DNA from: Macrostomum lignano
Taxonomy: Eukaryota
Assembly: GCA_002269645.1 (NCBI GenBank)
Contig: NIVC01000020.1
Span: 744,001 to 808,000 of the forward strand
Reading direction: 5' to 3'
DNA: 64,000 nucleotides
The notes under the pieces are model-generated. The model saw only the letters and a program-made list of their open reading frames with translations. It was not told the origin of the DNA and searched no databases. The position numbers and the translations under genes are program-made. Of the stretch, positions 2,078 to 22,817 are shown piece after piece. How positions within the stretch are numbered: position 1 is the stretch's first letter; the number at the start of each line of letters is the position of its first letter.

Positions 2078-5000
2078 TCACGGCTGCTGGCTGTACTTGG
2101 CGTGCATCCGCTGTGCCACCTCGTACACGTAGGAGATGTCAGGCCTGGCGTCCGGGCTGGGCTGGATCATGGCGCTGACCAGGTCGCGCAGCTGCGGGCG
2201 GCGGCGATGGGGAATTAGAGACCAGTAAGCTACTGTCAGTAGTGCATGTATATCGAACAGAGTGCTGGAGTAAAACAGGAATGCTTAAACTCAGAGATGT
2301 AGATATTTTAGAAAGCCGTAATTTTGACGCAGTTTTTTTACAAACTTTTTAACCTCAAGGACAAGATAAAAAATCCAGCTCATGGCTCCAGCTCTTGAAT
2401 CCAGCTCTCCTTCTCACTCTCCAGAAGAGAGTGGGAAGGAGAGGGAATACAAGATAAGATATGAGAGAAGAGAGAGGAGAGCGGAGAGAAAAAAGGGGAG
2501 AGAGAAGAGAGGGGAGAGAGGGAAGAGAGAGAGGAGAGAGTAGAGAGAGGGGAGAGGGGAGAGAGGAGAGAGGGGAGAGGGCGAGAGAGGAGAGAGTAGA
2601 GAGAGGGGAGAGAGTAGAGAGAGGGGAGAGAGTGGAGAGGGCGAGAGAGGAGAGAGTAGAGAGAGGGGAGAGAGTAGAGAGAGGGGAGAGAGTAGAGAGA
2701 GGAGAGAGTAGAGAGAGGGGAGAGGGGAGAGAGGAGAGAGGGGAGAGGGGCGAGAGAGGAGAGAGTAGAGAGAGGGGAGAGAGTAGAAAGAGGGGAGAGA
2801 GTAGAGAGAGGAGAGAGTAGAGAGAGGGGAGAGAGGAGAGAGGAGAGAGGGGAGAGGGGCGAGAGAGGAGAGAGTAGAGAGAGGGGAGAGAGTAGAGAGG
2901 AGAGAGTAGAGAGAGGGGAGAGAGTAGAGAGGAGAGAGGAGAGAGAGGGGAGAGAAGGGAGAAGAGAGGAGAGGGGAGAGAGGAGAGAAAAAAGGGGAGA
3001 GAGAAGAGAGGGGAGAGAGGGAAGAGAGAGGAGAGAGTAGAGAGAAGAGAGTAGAGAGGAGAGAGGAGAGAGAGGGGAGAGAAGGGAGAAGAGAGGATAG
3101 GGGAGAGAGGAGAGAGGAGAGGGCAGAGAGGAGAGAGGAGAGGAGAGGGGAGGTGCTTAAAAGAGACATGAACCATGAGCGGATGGGCTCGCTATCGTAA
3201 AGTTTCAAAGGACCCGACGGCCGGATAGAGAGGCTTCGCGGGTGGGAGTTTGCCGACCCCAGGGTTAGCCCAATTAAACAGTTAAGTGGATAATAAAATC
3301 TGATTTTAAAATGAGGCTATTTTTAAATCACTACTGAAAATCAGAAATCTTAAAATCAGCTTATTAAACTTGATAACAAGTTTACCTCGCTCGAGTAGAT
3401 GTCCGCAGGCAGGGGCGGGTAGTCGCACTGCTCAATCTTCTTGCACAGCGAGTACAGGTTCATCTTGTCGCCATAGAAGGGGCTCTGCAGGGCGGCCATC
3501 TCGTACAGCAGGCAGCCCAGGGACCACAGGTCCGACTTGAAGTTGTAGCCGTTCTCGTGGATGCGCTCGGGGCTCATGTAGTAGGGCGTGCCGACTGGGG
3601 GGGGGCAGCGGGCTGCTATGAGTGATCTAACAGTCCCGACTCCTGACCCAACAGTCCCAACTCCTGACCCAACAGTCCCAAATCCTGACCCAACAGTTCC
3701 TACTCCTGACCCAACAGTCCCAACTCCTGACCCAACAGTCCCAAATCCTGACCCAACAGAGCAGCAACCACTCACCAAGCGAGTGGGCATTGGTGGTCTT
3801 GGAGCTGAAGAAGCGACCAAGGCCCAGGTCTCCCAGCTTAACCTGGCCGCTGGCCGTGATGAACACGTTAGCCGGCTTGATGTCTGCGGGTATCAAAGCC
3901 GATGCATACTACTCATTAGCGATATGGGCGCCAATTTCTAAATGCTTTTAGAGATCTTTGGTGCAATCAATGCAGAACCGGATCCTGAATTTCGATCCGG
4001 TTCAAATCAATAACCAGCTTTAGCTTTGGTGCAATCAATGCAGAACCGGATCCTGAATTTCGATCCGGTTCAAATCAATAACCAGCTTTAGCTTTGGTGC
4101 AATCAATGCAGAACCGGATCTTGAATTTCGATCCGGTTCAAATCAATAACCAGCTTTAGCTTTGGTGCAATCAATGCAGAACCGGATCTTGAATTTCGAT
4201 CCGGTTCAAATCAATAACCAGCTTTAGCAAAGACGAAGCGATGGAAATGAGTTCACAGTCTTTGACTCTCGGCTCTTTCAGGGCCACTATTGAGAGAAAA
4301 GTCATGCTGAGACTGCCTGCTCCCCACACCCTCAAGTGAGAAGGCAATGCCCTCAAGCCATGGCAATAGCAGCCCACCTCTGTGCATAATCCGTTTGGAG
4401 TGCATGTGGTCCAGGCCGCTGCAGATCTGCACAAAGTACTTCCAGATGGTCTTCTCCGGGATGAGGCGCTGCTGCTTCTTGAAGTGCTGCAAGGAGGGTT
4501 GCAACGGGGCGGCGAGGGGATATGAGAGCGGGGCGGCCATTGTGCTGTGCGTGAGGATAGGGAAGGGGAAAAGTGGCACTGGGAATTCATTAAGGCACGG
4601 AGTGCTAAACCTACACATCTGGAGACTGAGCAGCTTGAAGTAGTGAGAGCGGAAGGGGTTTCCACTCCAGATATTTCTATCTAGAAGTCTGTGAGATAGT
4701 GAAATCAGAGCTTTCACTCCTGATGTTTATATCCAGGAGTCCGTGCGGCAGTAATAAAATCGAAAACGGGTTTCCACTCCATATGTCTATATCCAGGAGT
4801 CCCTGAGGCAGTAGTGAAAGTGGAGGGGTTTCCACTCCAGATGTTTATACCCAAGAGTCCGTGAGGCAGCAGCAGCTCACCTTGATCATGCGGGACAGGT
4901 CCCCGGCGTCGGCCAGCTCCAGCACAATGTTCAGCTCATTGTTCTCAATAAATGAGGCCAGGTAGCGAATGACGTTTGGGTGGTCCAGTTGCTGCGGTGT

Positions 5001-6824
5001 GCCGGGCGAGCATAAATTATTCATGAGCAAAACCGGTGGGTCAATAATTCATCTGAGGACTTTTCTTCACACAGCGCCTGCACAACCCCTTATCCCATGC
5101 CAGCTGAGCCTGAGGCTTGGGGATTAAAAGGCTGGGGCTGCGGCCCTCCATTTGTACCCACCTTGAGCAAGTCGATCTCCTTGATGCAGTCCTGCCGCGC
5201 CTTGGCGTCCATCATCTCGAAGATCTGCGGGTTGTGGCGGCGGGCGAGCTCTGCGTTTTGCCTGTTTGATCTCTGCTGGGCCGTGCTCAAATATCTCTCT
5301 TGAGTTGAGAAAGTTGAGCACTTTGTAAAGTCAATCAAGAATTAGGCAAAAACCAGCCGAGTTGTGAGTTGCAATCAGGCAAAAGTGCAAATTTGTGAGT
5401 TTGCCAGGCGCTTCGCAAATCAAGACTTGGCGGCCTGCATGGGATTCTGAAAGCTGCCTTTAGGCCGATGTGGGAAGTGAGGGTCAAGCCGGAGCTAGAG
5501 ATCAGATCCCAATATGGGAAGTGAGGGTCAAGCCGGAGCTAGAGATCAGATCCCAATATGGGAAGTGAGGGTCAAGCCGGAGCTAGAGATCAGATCCCAA
5601 TATGGGAAGTGAGGGTCAAGTCAGAGCTAGAGATCAGATCCCAATATGGGAAGTGAGGGTCAAGCCGGGGCTAGAGATCAAATCCCAATATGGGAAGTGA
5701 GGGTCAAGCCGGAGCCAGAGATCAGATCCCAATATGGGAAGTGAGGGTCAAGCCGGAGCCAGAGATCAGATCCCAATATGGGAAGTGAGGGTCAAGCCGG
5801 AGCCAGAGATCAGATCCCAATATGGGAAGTGAGGGTCAAGCCGGAGCCAGAGATCAGATCCCAATATGGGAAGTGAGGGTCAAGCCGGAGCCAGAGATCA
5901 GATCCCAATATGGGAAGTGAGGGTCAAGCCGGAGCTAGAGATCAGATCCCAATATGGGAAGTGAGGGTCAAGCCGGAGCCAGAGATCAGATCCCAATATG
6001 GGAAGTGAGGGTCAAGCCGGAGAGAACAATCCAGGAATTCCAGTGCAGAATCCAGCGCAAGGGGCAGCCGAGGCCCTACCTGGACCTTCTTAAGCGCCAC
6101 CACGCATTCGTCCTCGCGGCAGATGGCGCGCCAAACCTCGCTGAACTGGCCCTTGCCAATTTTTTTATCAATTTTGAACTTGGCCAGGGAGCCGTACTTA
6201 TTTTCCGGGTCGTGATTCGGCACCACAAAGTCAGCGTCCATGGCTGCTGCAAGACGCGCATTGGCACACAAAGTTTGAATTTAAATGAGCAGTTTTGATT
6301 GAGCGGCGCTCGGGTTACTACTATTAAATCAGCTGATCAGCAGATCGATAATTAGTCTTGCCAAGATTTGTTATTGCAGTTATTGATCGATTTGTTAGAT
6401 CGAATTTGATTAGAAAGCTGTATGGCTAAAAATGATTAGAGAGCAGCGCCGAGTTAGCAAGTTCGAAGCGGCACACTGCATAGCAACGGGCGCAATTGCC
6501 TTAGCAACGAAGCGAGGCGACATTAGCTACCTGAACTTTCTTGAGCGCCACAACCCTGCCGTCAACAATGCAGTGAGCTTTGTACACAACCGAGAACTGG
6601 CCCTTCCCTATGCGCTTCTCAATCTGCAGGTTGGCCAGCGCGGAGTAGGGGTTCTCTTGGGGCAGCTGCACTGGATAGCTGAAGTCTGCATCATAGGCGG
6701 CAGCTGCTGCCGGCACATGCGGAGCAGCAAGCGCAGTATAGTACAGAGTGCCCTGCTGTGGCTGCTGCTGCTGTTGAAGAAAAGCCTCGCCAATGTTGTA
6801 GCGATAGTCCTGCTGACCGTCCAT
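2078..6824 (-). CDS. NEK7: NIMA-related kinase 6/7 (NEK6/7), two alternative first coding exons plus six shared exons
   Basis: Exons (minus): 1a 6531-6824 or 1b 6080-6241; 5162-5224; 4881-4991; 4378-4486; 3776-3883; 3386-3594; 2078-2191 (TGA). All junctions are GT-AG and in phase. The spliced protein reads [97 protein letters not shown], near-identical to NEK6/NEK7 as recalled. About 335 aa (1a) or 291 aa (1b). Confidence 0.96.
2336..3260. mobile_element. Degenerate second copy of the Charlie-like MITE with internal GA-rich array (NEK last intron)
   Basis: 3155-3260 aligns by eye to 25562-25678 (GGCCGGATAGAGAGGCTT..GGAGTTTGCCGACCCC). The left end CAAACTTTT..ACCT.AAGG resembles 24873-24895. 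Confidence 0.55.
2462..3150. repeat. GA-rich simple repeat array
   Basis: (GAGAG/GGAGA)n, seen directly. Confidence 0.95.
3629..3758. repeat. 21-bp minisatellite, about 6 copies (NEK intron)
   Basis: Unit AACAGTCCCAACTCCTGACCC. Confidence 0.9.
3957..4228. repeat. 68-bp tandem repeat x4, each unit with a 10-bp-stem hairpin
   Basis: Unit contains GAACCGGATC-N9-GATCCGGTTC. Confidence 0.9.
4655..4868. repeat. Degenerate ~55-60-bp tandem repeat, about 4 copies
   Basis: Recurring TTTCCACTCCAGAT.TTTATA..CAGGAGTCC.TG.GGCAG. Confidence 0.7.
5471..6021. repeat. 44-bp minisatellite, about 12.5 copies (NEK intron 1)
   Basis: Unit TGGGAAGTGAGGGTCAAGCCGGAGC(T/C)AGAGATCAGATCCCAATA. Confidence 0.95.
6080..6241 (-). 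CDS. NEK7: NEK6/7 alternative first exon 1b (short N-terminus plus subdomains I-II)
   Basis: ATG 6241 (GCCATGG context); MDADFVVP...[36 protein letters not shown]; phase-0 donor CAG|GTAGGG at 6079. Confidence 0.88.
6531..6824 (-). CDS. NEK7: NEK6/7 alternative first exon 1a (long N-terminus plus subdomains I-II)
   Basis: ATG 6824; MDGQQDY...YDADFSYP...[36 protein letters not shown]; phase-0 donor CAG|GTAGCT at 6530. Confidence 0.88.
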
Positions 6825-7815
6825 TGTATGCTCTGTGTGCAGCCTACAGACTGTCAGTTGTCTAGCAAATCAGGTTGGCATGGCAACCAATGTTACAGTG
6901 ATGACCCCAGATTTCATTACTGACTTAATTATGATCTTTTTGAAGAAAAGTAGAAAAAGTAGAAGAAAGGCATTATATGTTAACAAAAGCTCACCTATAA
7001 AGCATCCCTACTAGAAATTAATGTTTAAAACCTATAGACTTTTGCTACTAAATCTCAAGAATTACCAACTCATAAGCCTTGATAAACATTAGCCTATTGC
7101 TTTGCTAAAAAATTGTCACTAAACATTTGCCAACAAAACTAAGAGCATGCTAATTTTTCTAGATACCTGCATATTTAAAAAATATCACTTATTCTAACAA
7201 AATTGTTTGACTTTATATAAAGTAATATTTTCTATTAGACCATCTTAAATTAAAAGGAACATGTTTTTAAATATTTAGATTTTTCTTTAACATTTCTAAT
7301 TAGCTTCAATTTTATTTTATCACTTTATTGACACTTAGTAAGTCAATAGAAATATATGATTTTTAATTATTCTGGCAATATAGATTAATTATAGTTGCTT
7401 AAAAAATAAGAGTAAAATTAATACAAAATGAACTAAAATAAAAAATCTGATTTCTTTAACAGTTAAATAATAAAATGTTCTTTGCAATTATGATTTTCTT
7501 TGATTGGTTAATATTCTATAGATCACATTATACTTGTCTAAATGAATACATTAGGGTAGGAATTATTTTTGCAATGAGAATAATAACTTTGACTTAAGAT
7601 AGTTTTGGGCAAAAATTAAATTTTAATTTTAATTATTCTAAAAGTACCATATTTCTTGTGAAAGGTTGCAAATACTTTTAAACAGAAATAAAACATTAGA
7701 AAGCATATCAAAATATGGTCACAGTCACATAACTATAACTATCTTTTAGTTGAAAATTGATTGGATTACTTTATTATTGAACTTTAAAATGAAGGTTAAA
7801 AAACTGTGTGTTAAG

Positions 7816-9329: not shown

Positions 9330-17701
<8,372 letters not shown>

Positions 17702-21425: not shown

Positions 21426-22817
21426 TCAGGGCGGCTCGGCGGCGCCGCCGCTTTCCGGCGTCTCCTCGAAGTCGCGCTCCTTGCTGGCCGCGTAGTCGAT
21501 TAGCTCGGCGAGCTGGCGGCTGGTCTGCAGGCCGTACCAGAAGATTGTCCAGTTCTGGTCGGCCTTCCAGCTGCCCTGGGACACGGTGTTGTACCAGGCG
21601 ATGGCCGCCCTGTTGGTGACATTCGAGCGCCAGAACAGCTGCGGGTAGTCCTTGACGATCTGGTTCCACAGCATCACGGAGATGCCCGTGCCCTGGGCGA
21701 TTTCGCTCACCGCAATCTTGTCCAGGTAGGGGACGCTCACGTTCGGCAGGCGCAGGATCACCGCGGCTGCGTTGTAGTTCTCGCTGACGTACACCGACTC
21801 CACATGGCCCTGCACTCTCTCGAAGTAGTTGCTGCGCAGCTTCTTCTGGAAGGACTCGTTGATCAGCGCCACCATGCTAGGCTTCTTCACGCTGTCCAGC
21901 GAGCTGTAGCGGAAGATCTTCTCAATCTGCCTGATCATGGTTCCAGATCCGTGGTGGGTGAACAGCTCCTCGATCACCGTGTCGGCACTGGTGAGGATCA
22001 CGGAGCTCTCGCAGGACAGGTGCTTGATAAGCTCAGTGGATCGCAACACCTTCGCCTGGTCCTCGGTGCTCAGGTGGCTATTCGAGCTGACCAGCTCGTC
22101 CAAGTCTGTCGGCAGGTAGACGTCGCTAATTACTTTCCCATTGACGTCTTTCAGGCCGGCTTTCTGGCTCAGCAACATCACTTTGAGTGGCCTGAGTGTT
22201 GAGCACAAGTGCACCATGGTCTTCTGGGCGCTGGTGTCTGTGGGGCCGAGCATCGGGCAGCAGACGATGGGCAACGTGGAGTGGCTGCTGGACAGCAGCT
22301 CGGCGGGGTTGTGCTCGTTGCCAAGGATCAGTCTTGACGGCACGCCGCGCTTGTACAGCAGGGACTGCAGAAGCTGCACATTCTGGAAGTCGCGGTCGTT
22401 GGCCAGCTGGCACACCAGCACGGATGTCAGGTTGTTCTCGAACAAGAAGGTGGTGGACCACGTCAGCTTGCGCACGCTGCTGGCGTCGCTCAGAACCTCC
22501 GGCGAGACCTGCATGACTGAGAAGGCTCGGCGCGGCGACTTCGCTGAGAAGATTTTGAAGTACTTAAACCACAGCCGGGCCTCCTTCGGCTTCCTGGTGA
22601 TGTTTTCCACGAACTTGCGCAGCCCCATCGCCCGGGTGATCTCCTCCTGCGGCTTCGGCTCGGCCGTCATCGGGTCCTGCAGCCTCACCTGGCGGAACTG
22701 CGGCTGGCTGGACAGGGAGGGGTGGCCGCCGTGCACAAAGCCGGACGCGGCAACGGTTCGCTGCACCAGCAGCGGCAGCCGCCTGCAGAGCCGCAGCGAG
22801 CAGGACGGGCAGGACAT
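21426..22817 (-). CDS. NAGS: N-acetylglutamate synthase, mitochondrial/vertebrate type (AAK-like plus NAT domain), single exon, 463 aa
   Basis: Uninterrupted ORF. Arg-rich N-terminus resembles a mitochondrial presequence. Arginine-site motif ELFTHHGSGT; NAT-domain motifs PYLDKIAV, QGTGISVMLW, LFWRS, WY, W.IFWYG. Confidence 0.9.
   Translation of the reverse strand: MSCPSCSLRLCRRLPLLVQRTVAASGFVHGGHPSLSSQPQFRQVRLQDPMTAEPKPQEEITRAMGLRKFVENITRKPKEARLWFKYFKIFSAKSPRRAFSVMQVSPEVLSDASSVRKLTWSTTFLFENNLTSVLVCQLANDRDFQNVQLLQSLLYKRGVPSRLILGNEHNPAELLSSSHSTLPIVCCPMLGPTDTSAQKTMVHLCSTLRPLKVMLLSQKAGLKDVNGKVISDVYLPTDLDELVSSNSHLSTEDQAKVLRSTELIKHLSCESSVILTSADTVIEELFTHHGSGTMIRQIEKIFRYSSLDSVKKPSMVALINESFQKKLRSNYFERVQGHVESVYVSENYNAAAVILRLPNVSVPYLDKIAVSEIAQGTGISVMLWNQIVKDYPQLFWRSNVTNRAAIAWYNTVSQGSWKADQNWTIFWYGLQTSRQLAELIDYAASKERDFEETPESGGAAEPP

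Follow-up and report, generated by a model that had tools for sequence, protein, structure and literature searches.

A NEK6/7 kinase gene of the flatworm Macrostomum lignano with two tandem-duplicated first coding exons, both probably kept as coding

In the flatworm Macrostomum lignano, a gene for a kinase of the NEK6/7 subfamily carries two versions of its first coding exon side by side, and the sequence makes it likely that this one gene gives rise to two kinases. The gene lies on the minus strand of a 64-kb window of contig NIVC01000020.1 (assembly Mlig_3_7), and coordinates given without a contig name are positions in this window. We call the two first coding exons 1a and 1b, their predicted products isoA and isoB, and the gene itself type I. 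The reading that we favor, and hold to be probable, is that type I is one of two NEK6/7 genes in M. lignano, that its first exon was tandem-duplicated long ago, and that both copies have been kept as coding exons.

Results

The two first coding exons

The type I gene is compact, with seven exons and introns that are all GT-AG, the first coding exon being present in two versions (Table 1). Exon 1a encodes a 43-residue Q/A-rich extension followed by a tail with the motif DADF, the Gly-rich loop and strand beta3 (VALKKVQ), and exon 1b encodes an MDADF tail followed by the Gly-rich loop and the catalytic-Lys strand. The preliminary description of this DNA had proposed two adjacent exons that each bear a start Met and these three motifs, and this is what the minus strand holds. 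The ATG of 1b stands in a strong context (GCCATGG) and that of 1a in the context ACAATGG. Both exons end in phase 0, in the form ...AAGAA(A/G)GT(T/C)CAG/GTAG (a slash outside brackets marks the splice junction), with donors CAG/GTAGCT for 1a and CAG/GTAGGG for 1b. These donors fit the shared exon at 5224, again as proposed, and joining either exon to exons 2-7 yields a clean open reading frame (ORF), of 335 amino acids for isoA and 291 for isoB.

The two exons have DADF, IGKGQFS(V/E)V(Y/W) and VALKKVQ in common, are 59% identical over 54 aligned residues, and find each other in reciprocal tblastn searches (E = 5e-15 and 3e-14). We conclude from this alignment that their likeness is true homology and not chance, and that the exons are tandem duplicates. 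We rejected DADF as a lineage-specific mark of a recent duplication, as it matches a widespread N-terminal motif: many bilaterian NEK6/7 proteins have PMDF/MDL close to the N-terminus, and DADF is its local form.

Directly 5' of the 1b ATG, the only acceptor AGs are those at 6248-6247 and 6245-6244. Joining 1a to either of them shifts the frame and leads to a TGA in exon 2, as the preliminary description had held, and an mRNA with both exons would be non-productive and probably removed by nonsense-mediated decay. No upstream exon is common to 1a and 1b, each has its own ATG, and the isoA transcript is colinear from 30-33 nt 5' of 1a. The duplicated exons had been called mutually exclusive; the duplication stands, but with a separate ATG in each exon and a separate 5' untranslated region (UTR) for 1a, the pair is better termed alternative first coding exons than classical internal mutually exclusive exons. 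Neither a third exon copy nor a second NEK gene was found within the 64-kb window. A search for long-range intron pairing of the docking-site/selector type found short local palindromes only, and no Rfam family scored above threshold anywhere in the window when the introns were searched for non-coding RNA.

Table 1. Coordinates of the type I NEK6/7 gene in the M. lignano window and of the paired first exons of Lingula anatina NEK7.
Feature	Position	Strand	Details
5' UTR of isoA, minimum extent	6825..6854	-	translated in GenBank models; identical in 3/3 genomic copies
Exon 1a, alternative first coding exon	6531..6824	-	294 nt, 98 codons; donor GT 6530-6529
Intron 1a-1b	6242..6530	-	289 nt, 44% GC
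TTGCAG 3' splice site before 1b	6247..6252	-	5 nt 5' of 1b ATG; second AG at 6245-6244
Exon 1b, alternative first coding exon	6080..6241	-	162 nt, 54 codons; donor GT 6079-6078
Intron 1b-exon 2	5225..6079	-	855 nt in window copy; holds 44-bp minisatellite
Shared exon 2	5162..5224	-	phase 0 at both ends; acceptor ...CCGCAG/ATC
Shared exon 3	4881..4991	-	spliced gene model
Shared exon 4	4378..4486	-	spliced gene model; acceptor CTTGCAG
Shared exon 5, HRD and DLG region	3776..3883	-	spliced gene model
Shared exon 6	3386..3594	-	spliced gene model
Shared exon 7, with stop TGA 2080-2078	2078..2191	-	spliced gene model
Lingula upstream exon	L006 10001-10180		SVVY/IEK type; ...FEIEKKVGRGQFSVVYRA...
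Lingula downstream exon	L006 10808-10978		SEVW/IDK type; exon 2 ~1.9 kb further on

Kinase identity and the segment that differs

The protein is a NEK6/7-subfamily kinase on the evidence of its sequence, which agrees with the earlier assignment of the gene. A profile of the full-length protein matched M. lignano proteins at 100% identity, and the sequence of the window is that of NIVC01000020.1 without a difference. A phmmer search of the PDB aligned query residues 56-329 with residues 24-297 of human NEK7 (E = 1e-157), the best database matches are all named NEK6-subfamily or Nek7, and Pfam PF00069 is recorded for GenBank model PAA93825 (P0194). The flatworm kinase core is 83% identical to that of human NEK7. 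The catalytic Lys (NEK7 K63), HRD, DLG and the autoinhibitory Tyr97 (..NVIRYLASF) are all kept, and NEK7 Asn90 is replaced by Asp. VALKK is present in both first exons, and HRD, DLG and the Tyr97 equivalent lie in shared exons.

Residue i of isoA corresponds to residue i-32 of human NEK7, and in this numbering the swapped exon ends at NEK7 Gln66, comprising the N-terminal extension, beta1, the Gly-rich loop, beta2, the beta2-beta3 loop and beta3 with Lys63. Between 1a and 1b there is no difference in the Gly-rich loop (IGKGQFS) or in beta3 (VALKKVQ). Differences are found at 16 of 41 N-lobe positions (NEK7 27, 29, 30, 33-35, 37, 39, 47, 49, 50, 52, 54, 55, 57 and 58), which fall in the N-terminal tail, beta1, beta2 and the beta2-beta3 loop; isoA adds the Q/A-rich extension, and everything from exon 2 on (alphaC onwards) is common to both isoforms. 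The exons had been thought to swap an ATP-binding segment of the N-lobe. This is right for the tail, beta1, beta2 and the beta2-beta3 loop, but the motifs that contact ATP are identical. Judging from where the differences lie, the isoforms would likely differ in activation, in dimerisation or self-association, or in the choice of partners, and not in catalysis.

A second NEK6/7 paralogue

M. lignano has a second, much older NEK6/7 paralogue, which we call type II (NIVC01002209.1 and NIVC01003182.1, here L002 and L003; GenBank PAA59953 and PAA52793). The suggestion that a single gene stands in for both NEK6 and NEK7 in this animal is thus contradicted. The type II first exon lies at 9986-10147 in both L002 and L003, is of the 1b type, and is the sole first exon; it is followed by a first intron of ~105 nt, and the type II introns cannot be aligned with those of type I. 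No 1a-like relic was found within 10 kb upstream of type II, even at E = 50.

Exon 1b and the type II first exon are 80% identical as proteins, with proportions of nonsynonymous and synonymous differences (pN and pS) of 0.12 and 0.96. GC content at third codon positions (GC3) is 0.41 in the type II first exon and 0.74 in 1b, and synonymous sites between the paralogues are therefore saturated. In its kinase-core part, 1b matches type II at 88% identity, a level equal to that of the constitutive exons 4-7 (89%). With 1a as outgroup, five of the six differences that can be polarised are derived in type II and one in 1b. The transcript-based GenBank models of type II (P0313 and P0314) carry only the 1b-type exon, which shows that in M. 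lignano a NEK6/7 core works with an N-lobe of the 1b type.

Constraint on exon 1b

The M. lignano line that was sequenced, DV1, has an extra chromosome duplication on top of the hidden polyploidy of the species (PMC8629364). Three genomic copies of the type I locus are present in the assembly (the window copy, L001, and two others, L004 and L005), and they differ by ~4.5% overall in this region. The window copy diverges from the others by 2.0% in exon 1a and by 1.2-1.9% in exon 1b; for the intron between these exons the figure is 3.1%, and for the 600 nt that precede 1a it is 5.2%. The intron also has a 10-bp indel, 24 nt 5' of the 1b ATG. The variable sites among the three copies, eight in 1a and three in 1b, are all synonymous third positions, and none of the copies differs from the others in the TTGCAG acceptor, ATG or donor of 1b. 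The GC3 of 1b is coding-like, compared with 44% GC in the adjoining intron.

We weighed these data against the possibility that 1b makes no protein here, being either a silent relic of the duplication or a poison exon that lowers kinase output through nonsense-mediated decay. Such an exon would fit a GenBank record in which all three copies have only 1a-exon 2 models, and 1b does have a good 3' splice site, which lets it follow 1a, its inclusion there bringing a premature stop in exon 2. Yet neither a relic nor a poison exon needs a frame of its own, and 1b has kept its ORF intact, together with a donor and an ATG in a strong context. Its differences among the copies are all synonymous, its pN against type II is low where pS is saturated, it has changed less than the constitutive first exon of type II, its GC3 is that of coding sequence, and the counterpart exon in the brachiopod Lingula anatina (see below) is equally intact. 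We consider it improbable that 1b is without a protein product. Protein-level purifying selection on 1b is clear from these comparisons, and because a relic or a mere poison exon would not show such constraint, we conclude from the substitution pattern that 1b has been a translated exon during most of its existence, if not throughout.

Age and origin of the duplication

Between 1a and 1b, dN is 0.46 and dS ~2.9, giving an omega of ~0.16. The flanks of the two exons hold no residual similarity above that of shuffled controls, and since the flanking intron sequence keeps no similarity, the duplication must be old. Measured against a consensus built from 115 metazoan NEK6/7 proteins, the two exons are equally distant (63% identity each), but in a complementary manner. 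At NEK7 positions 33, 37 and 49, 1a still has the ancestral N, E and Y, where 1b and type II share the derived K, D and W. A neighbor-joining tree of the exons, which is weak as it has only 42 columns, placed 1b with type II in 95.5% of 200 bootstraps and 1b with 1a in none of them. Exon 1b corresponds to the first exon that is usual in spiralians and to the sole first exon of type II. The exon duplication would then probably predate the split of types I and II, with 1a later lost from type II, and this is the simplest history.

The same features might instead reflect the collapse of two tandem NEK6/7 genes, of which the upstream one was reduced to its first exon (1a) and came to splice into the downstream one. 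Under that scenario 1a and 1b need not group together, as indeed they never do in the bootstraps; 1a could keep N33, E37 and Y49 that 1b and type II have lost, and the genome does contain a second NEK6/7 paralogue. However, no remnant of other exons of an upstream gene is present between 1a and 1b or elsewhere in the window, the two exons are only 289 nt apart, and the same compact layout is seen in Lingula. We give the collapse of two genes little weight compared with duplication of the exon, and the present-day functional outcome is the same under either.

Transcript support and public annotation

GenBank proteins PAA93825 (P0194) and PAA48738/PAA67148 (P0316) are isoA exactly, plus translated 5' UTR: they start with (L)TVCRLHTEHT, the in-frame translation of the 30-33 nt just 5' of the 1a ATG. 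The GenBank models of M. lignano derive from a genome-guided transcriptome (PMC5730564), and because these models are isoA, the junction of 1a with exon 2 that skips 1b is transcript-supported. Of the two junctions to exon 2 that had been predicted, the one from 6531 to 5224 is thus found in transcript-derived models, and the one from 6080 to 5224 is absent from the annotations queried. The proposal of one gene and two kinases fares accordingly: it is made likely by the 1a-exon 2 models and by the constraint on 1b, and the collections queried hold no 1b-exon 2 form.

UniProt and WormBase ParaSite list two models for the locus, A0A1I8GQY4 and A0A1I8ICQ9 (P0193 and P0315), in which 1a and 1b are fused in frame. 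Taken at face value, they would describe a single mRNA with both exons and a kinase of 398-439 amino acids with its N-lobe segment doubled. Beyond the existence of these entries, the fusion can be reproduced on the genome, although only by lengthening 1a by 22 nt to 6509, using the acceptor at 6246 and ignoring the strong 1a donor. The donor so used (C/GTTGCT) departs from the M. lignano consensus GT[G/A]AG and passes over CAG/GTAGCT 22 nt upstream. The resulting protein would contain the Gly-rich loop and the catalytic-Lys strand twice over, one set after the other, an arrangement unfit for a kinase N-lobe; among 320 proteins retrieved, none other than these two models has two such loops, and the transcript-based GenBank models lend the fusion no support. 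We regard a fused kinase as very improbable, and the models are probably an annotation artefact. Public annotation of the locus would then be incomplete in GenBank (1a only) and probably wrong in WormBase ParaSite and UniProt (both exons fused). Searches of the literature and its supplements turned up nothing on the gene identifiers Mlig033112, Mlig032735, Mlig024690 and Mlig032178, or on Macrostomum NEK7.

Possible routes to isoB

For isoA, transcription begins at least 30 nt 5' of the 1a ATG according to the transcript-based models, and the 1a donor (between 6531 and 6530) is joined to exon 2 at 5224 with 1b skipped. We infer that the isoB mRNA starts at or just before 1b and that its donor (between 6080 and 6079) is joined to the same exon 2, in which case the 1a-1b intron would serve isoB as outron or promoter.

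Three ways of forming the 5' end of isoB were considered. We lean, at somewhat below an even chance, to spliced-leader trans-splicing onto the TTGCAG (between 6247 and 6246), which would compete with cis-splicing of the 1a pre-mRNA and remove 1a as part of the outron. The sequence just before exon 1b is that of a textbook 3' splice site (cgtcTTGCAG/CAGCC ATG), and this route is favored because a true promoter-proximal first exon has no need of one. The site fits the spliced-leader acceptor motif of M. lignano, [T/C]TNCAG, and ~30% of genes in this species are trans-spliced, preferentially conserved ones (PMC8629364). The motif occurs in the window at ~1.1 per kb per strand, and it is also simply a good cis 3' splice site, as in the CTTGCAG of exon 4. 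Nearly as likely is a promoter inside the 289-nt 1a-1b intron. Cis-splicing from an unrecognised non-coding exon further upstream would be the third way, and we think it unlikely.

Several observations weigh against isoB being made, or against its being made in this manner. The 35-nt spliced leader of M. lignano ends in AUG, which joining at 6246 or 6243 would place in another frame than the 1b AUG; as read from the sequence, it would open an overlapping ORF of ~60 codons, and translation of isoB would need leaky scanning for this reason. The annotation pipeline cut transcripts by peaks of spliced-leader reads, yet no annotated gene starts at 1b, and the absence of a gene boundary there argues weakly against a strong spliced-leader site. 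The GenBank models of all three genomic copies use only 1a, and no transcript or annotation joining 1b to exon 2 at this locus was found in any collection queried. Exact isoB, isoB with a leading Ala and six variants of the out-of-frame product of 1a plus 1b were absent from a collection of ~15 billion proteins, in which exact look-ups of isoA and of the full type II protein likewise gave no match. When 1b or 1a with exons 2-3 was used as a protein fragment query, none of the matches listed exceeded ~81% identity over the whole query, and none of those listed had a length above ~1.75 times that of the query. The comparison between genomic copies, for its part, rests on few sites, three in 1b. 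As to the missing 1b-only annotation, it is weak evidence because the pipeline dropped isoforms below 75% of the major one (TACO --isoform-frac 0.75; PMC5730564).

First exons of NEK6/7 in other animals

To see whether the exon is doubled elsewhere, we searched NEK6/7 loci from other animals, covering the gene and 10 kb on either side in Lottia, Owenia, Priapulus and Nematostella. One copy was found in each of these four, and one also on a short Echinostoma contig. The NEK7 gene of Lingula anatina (LFEI02000073.1, L006) has two tandem first coding exons, each with an ATG and a phase-0 GT donor (Table 1). The second of these exons has an acceptor AG 5 nt ahead of its ATG, and the frame is shifted when the two are joined. 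The upstream exons of Lingula and M. lignano both keep SVVY/IEK; the downstream exon of Lingula and flatworm 1b share a DPxNxY tail, IDK and a rare Trp, and resemble the single exon of molluscs and annelids. The two species thus have the same exon order and architecture, but their upstream exons are only 59% identical and are not grouped in the tree. NCBI labels the Lingula NEK7 protein "isoform X1," which implies that further isoforms are annotated.

We also examined the crinoids Anneissia (SVVY) and Antedon (SEVY) as a possible pair of alternative exons and rejected them, as the first exon is 72% identical between them and the rest 96%, just as in hemichordates with a single type. Since V and E at this position flip between relatives as close as the crinoids, the SVVY/SEVY difference is a weak marker.

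A tentative reading, which we think rather less likely than not to be correct, is that the pair is of ancient spiralian origin rather than new in Macrostomum: the exon would have been duplicated before the lineages of flatworms and brachiopods separated, kept in the same order in Macrostomum and Lingula, with the ancestral-like SVVY/IEK copy upstream and the SEVW/IDK copy downstream, and lost in Lottia and Owenia. In the flatworm, cis-splicing and spliced-leader trans-splicing would on this reading compete for the 1b acceptor and so decide which exon is used.

A transcript on Logan contig ERR1712226_298957 (L012 182-1150) encodes a NEK6/7 protein (P0200) whose N-terminus, ..QQQQQPHQG..PQNENPYCRLVNFEIEKKIGRGQFSVVY, resembles the exon 1a extension and core. 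Its tail is 1a-like (QQQQQPxQG...ENPY), and the remainder is 88% identical to the flatworm kinase.

Repeats and neighboring genes

The intron between 1b and exon 2 is filled for the most part by a minisatellite with a 44-bp unit (5471-6022, 12.5 copies, 97% matches). In the three genomic copies this intron measures 855, 1523 and 2360 nt, the extra length being added copies of the 44-bp repeat. Four other introns of the gene have tandem arrays, at 2463-3152 (a GA-rich microsatellite of ~690 bp), 3629-3759 (21-bp unit x6), 3956-4228 (68-bp unit x4) and 4639-4869 (58-bp unit x4), so that five of its seven introns contain such arrays.

A ligand-gated ion channel ORF lies 5' of the NEK gene on the same strand (10478-11047, minus strand; Pfam Lig_chan, E = 1.5e-47) and may be g1 of the transcriptional unit whose member named g2 is the NEK gene. 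A 41-bp tandem repeat adjoins it (11183-11505, 7.9 copies, 98% matches). Further away, a 463-residue ORF at 21426-22817 (minus strand) encodes an N-acetylglutamate-synthase-type NAT domain (PF04768, E = 9e-41).

Discussion

Tandem exon duplication that yields homologous alternative segments of a protein is well known, also in kinases, where the exon 6a/6b pair of MAPK8/9 (JNK) and the exon 9 pair of MAPK14 are examples. We found no such case described for NEK6/7 or for M. lignano. The flatworm pair has much in common with these systems: the exons are adjacent and homologous, end in the same phase and code for one structural part of a conserved domain. The duplication goes back far, purifying selection acts on both copies, and including the two together breaks the frame. 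It differs in being a pair of first coding exons with their own ATGs and with unequal lengths (294 and 162 nt). The choice between them is probably made at the 5' end of the transcript, by promoter or by spliced-leader addition, and not between two internal splice sites. Mutually exclusive homologous exons of human genes have been reviewed (PMC9741552, PMC8373072), and the term NEK does not occur in these two surveys.

Competition of the kind envisaged for the 1b acceptor has precedents. Internal acceptors in Schistosoma mansoni are open both to cis-splicing and to the spliced leader, and the competition between the two gives rise to alternative isoforms (PMC5832876). Both there and in C. elegans sma-9 (PMC2904332), as would hold for the candidate presented here, an internal 3' splice site is usable in cis or by the spliced leader, and one gene can in this way yield mRNAs whose 5' coding ends differ. 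In those cases, however, the shorter isoform usually lacks a domain, whereas the candidate flatworm case would replace one segment with a homologous one.

Two studies describe vertebrate NEK6 and NEK7 as having near-identical catalytic domains, with the N-terminal extension as their main difference (PMC2807034, PMC3053220). The vertebrate proteins are products of separate genes and differ along their whole length, whereas the flatworm gene swaps one exon and leaves everything from exon 2 onward identical. The swapped part also includes beta1-beta3 and not the extension alone, and M. lignano has a second NEK6/7 gene besides. If the pair does date back to before the flatworm-brachiopod split, it would parallel the vertebrate NEK6/NEK7 gene pair at the level of exons and be hundreds of millions of years old, and homology with the Lingula exons would make it an old and overlooked alternative-exon module of a cell-cycle kinase. 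If isoB is made by spliced-leader addition, the gene would clearly exemplify a choice between homologous protein segments that is made by trans-splicing. The distinct roles of the near-identical NEK6 and NEK7 in vertebrates have been attributed largely to the N-terminal extension and to activation mediated by the N-lobe. A natural swap of only this N-terminal/N-lobe segment on an otherwise identical kinase would isolate what the segment contributes, and M. lignano, a transgenic and regenerating laboratory model, is an animal in which that contribution could be tested.

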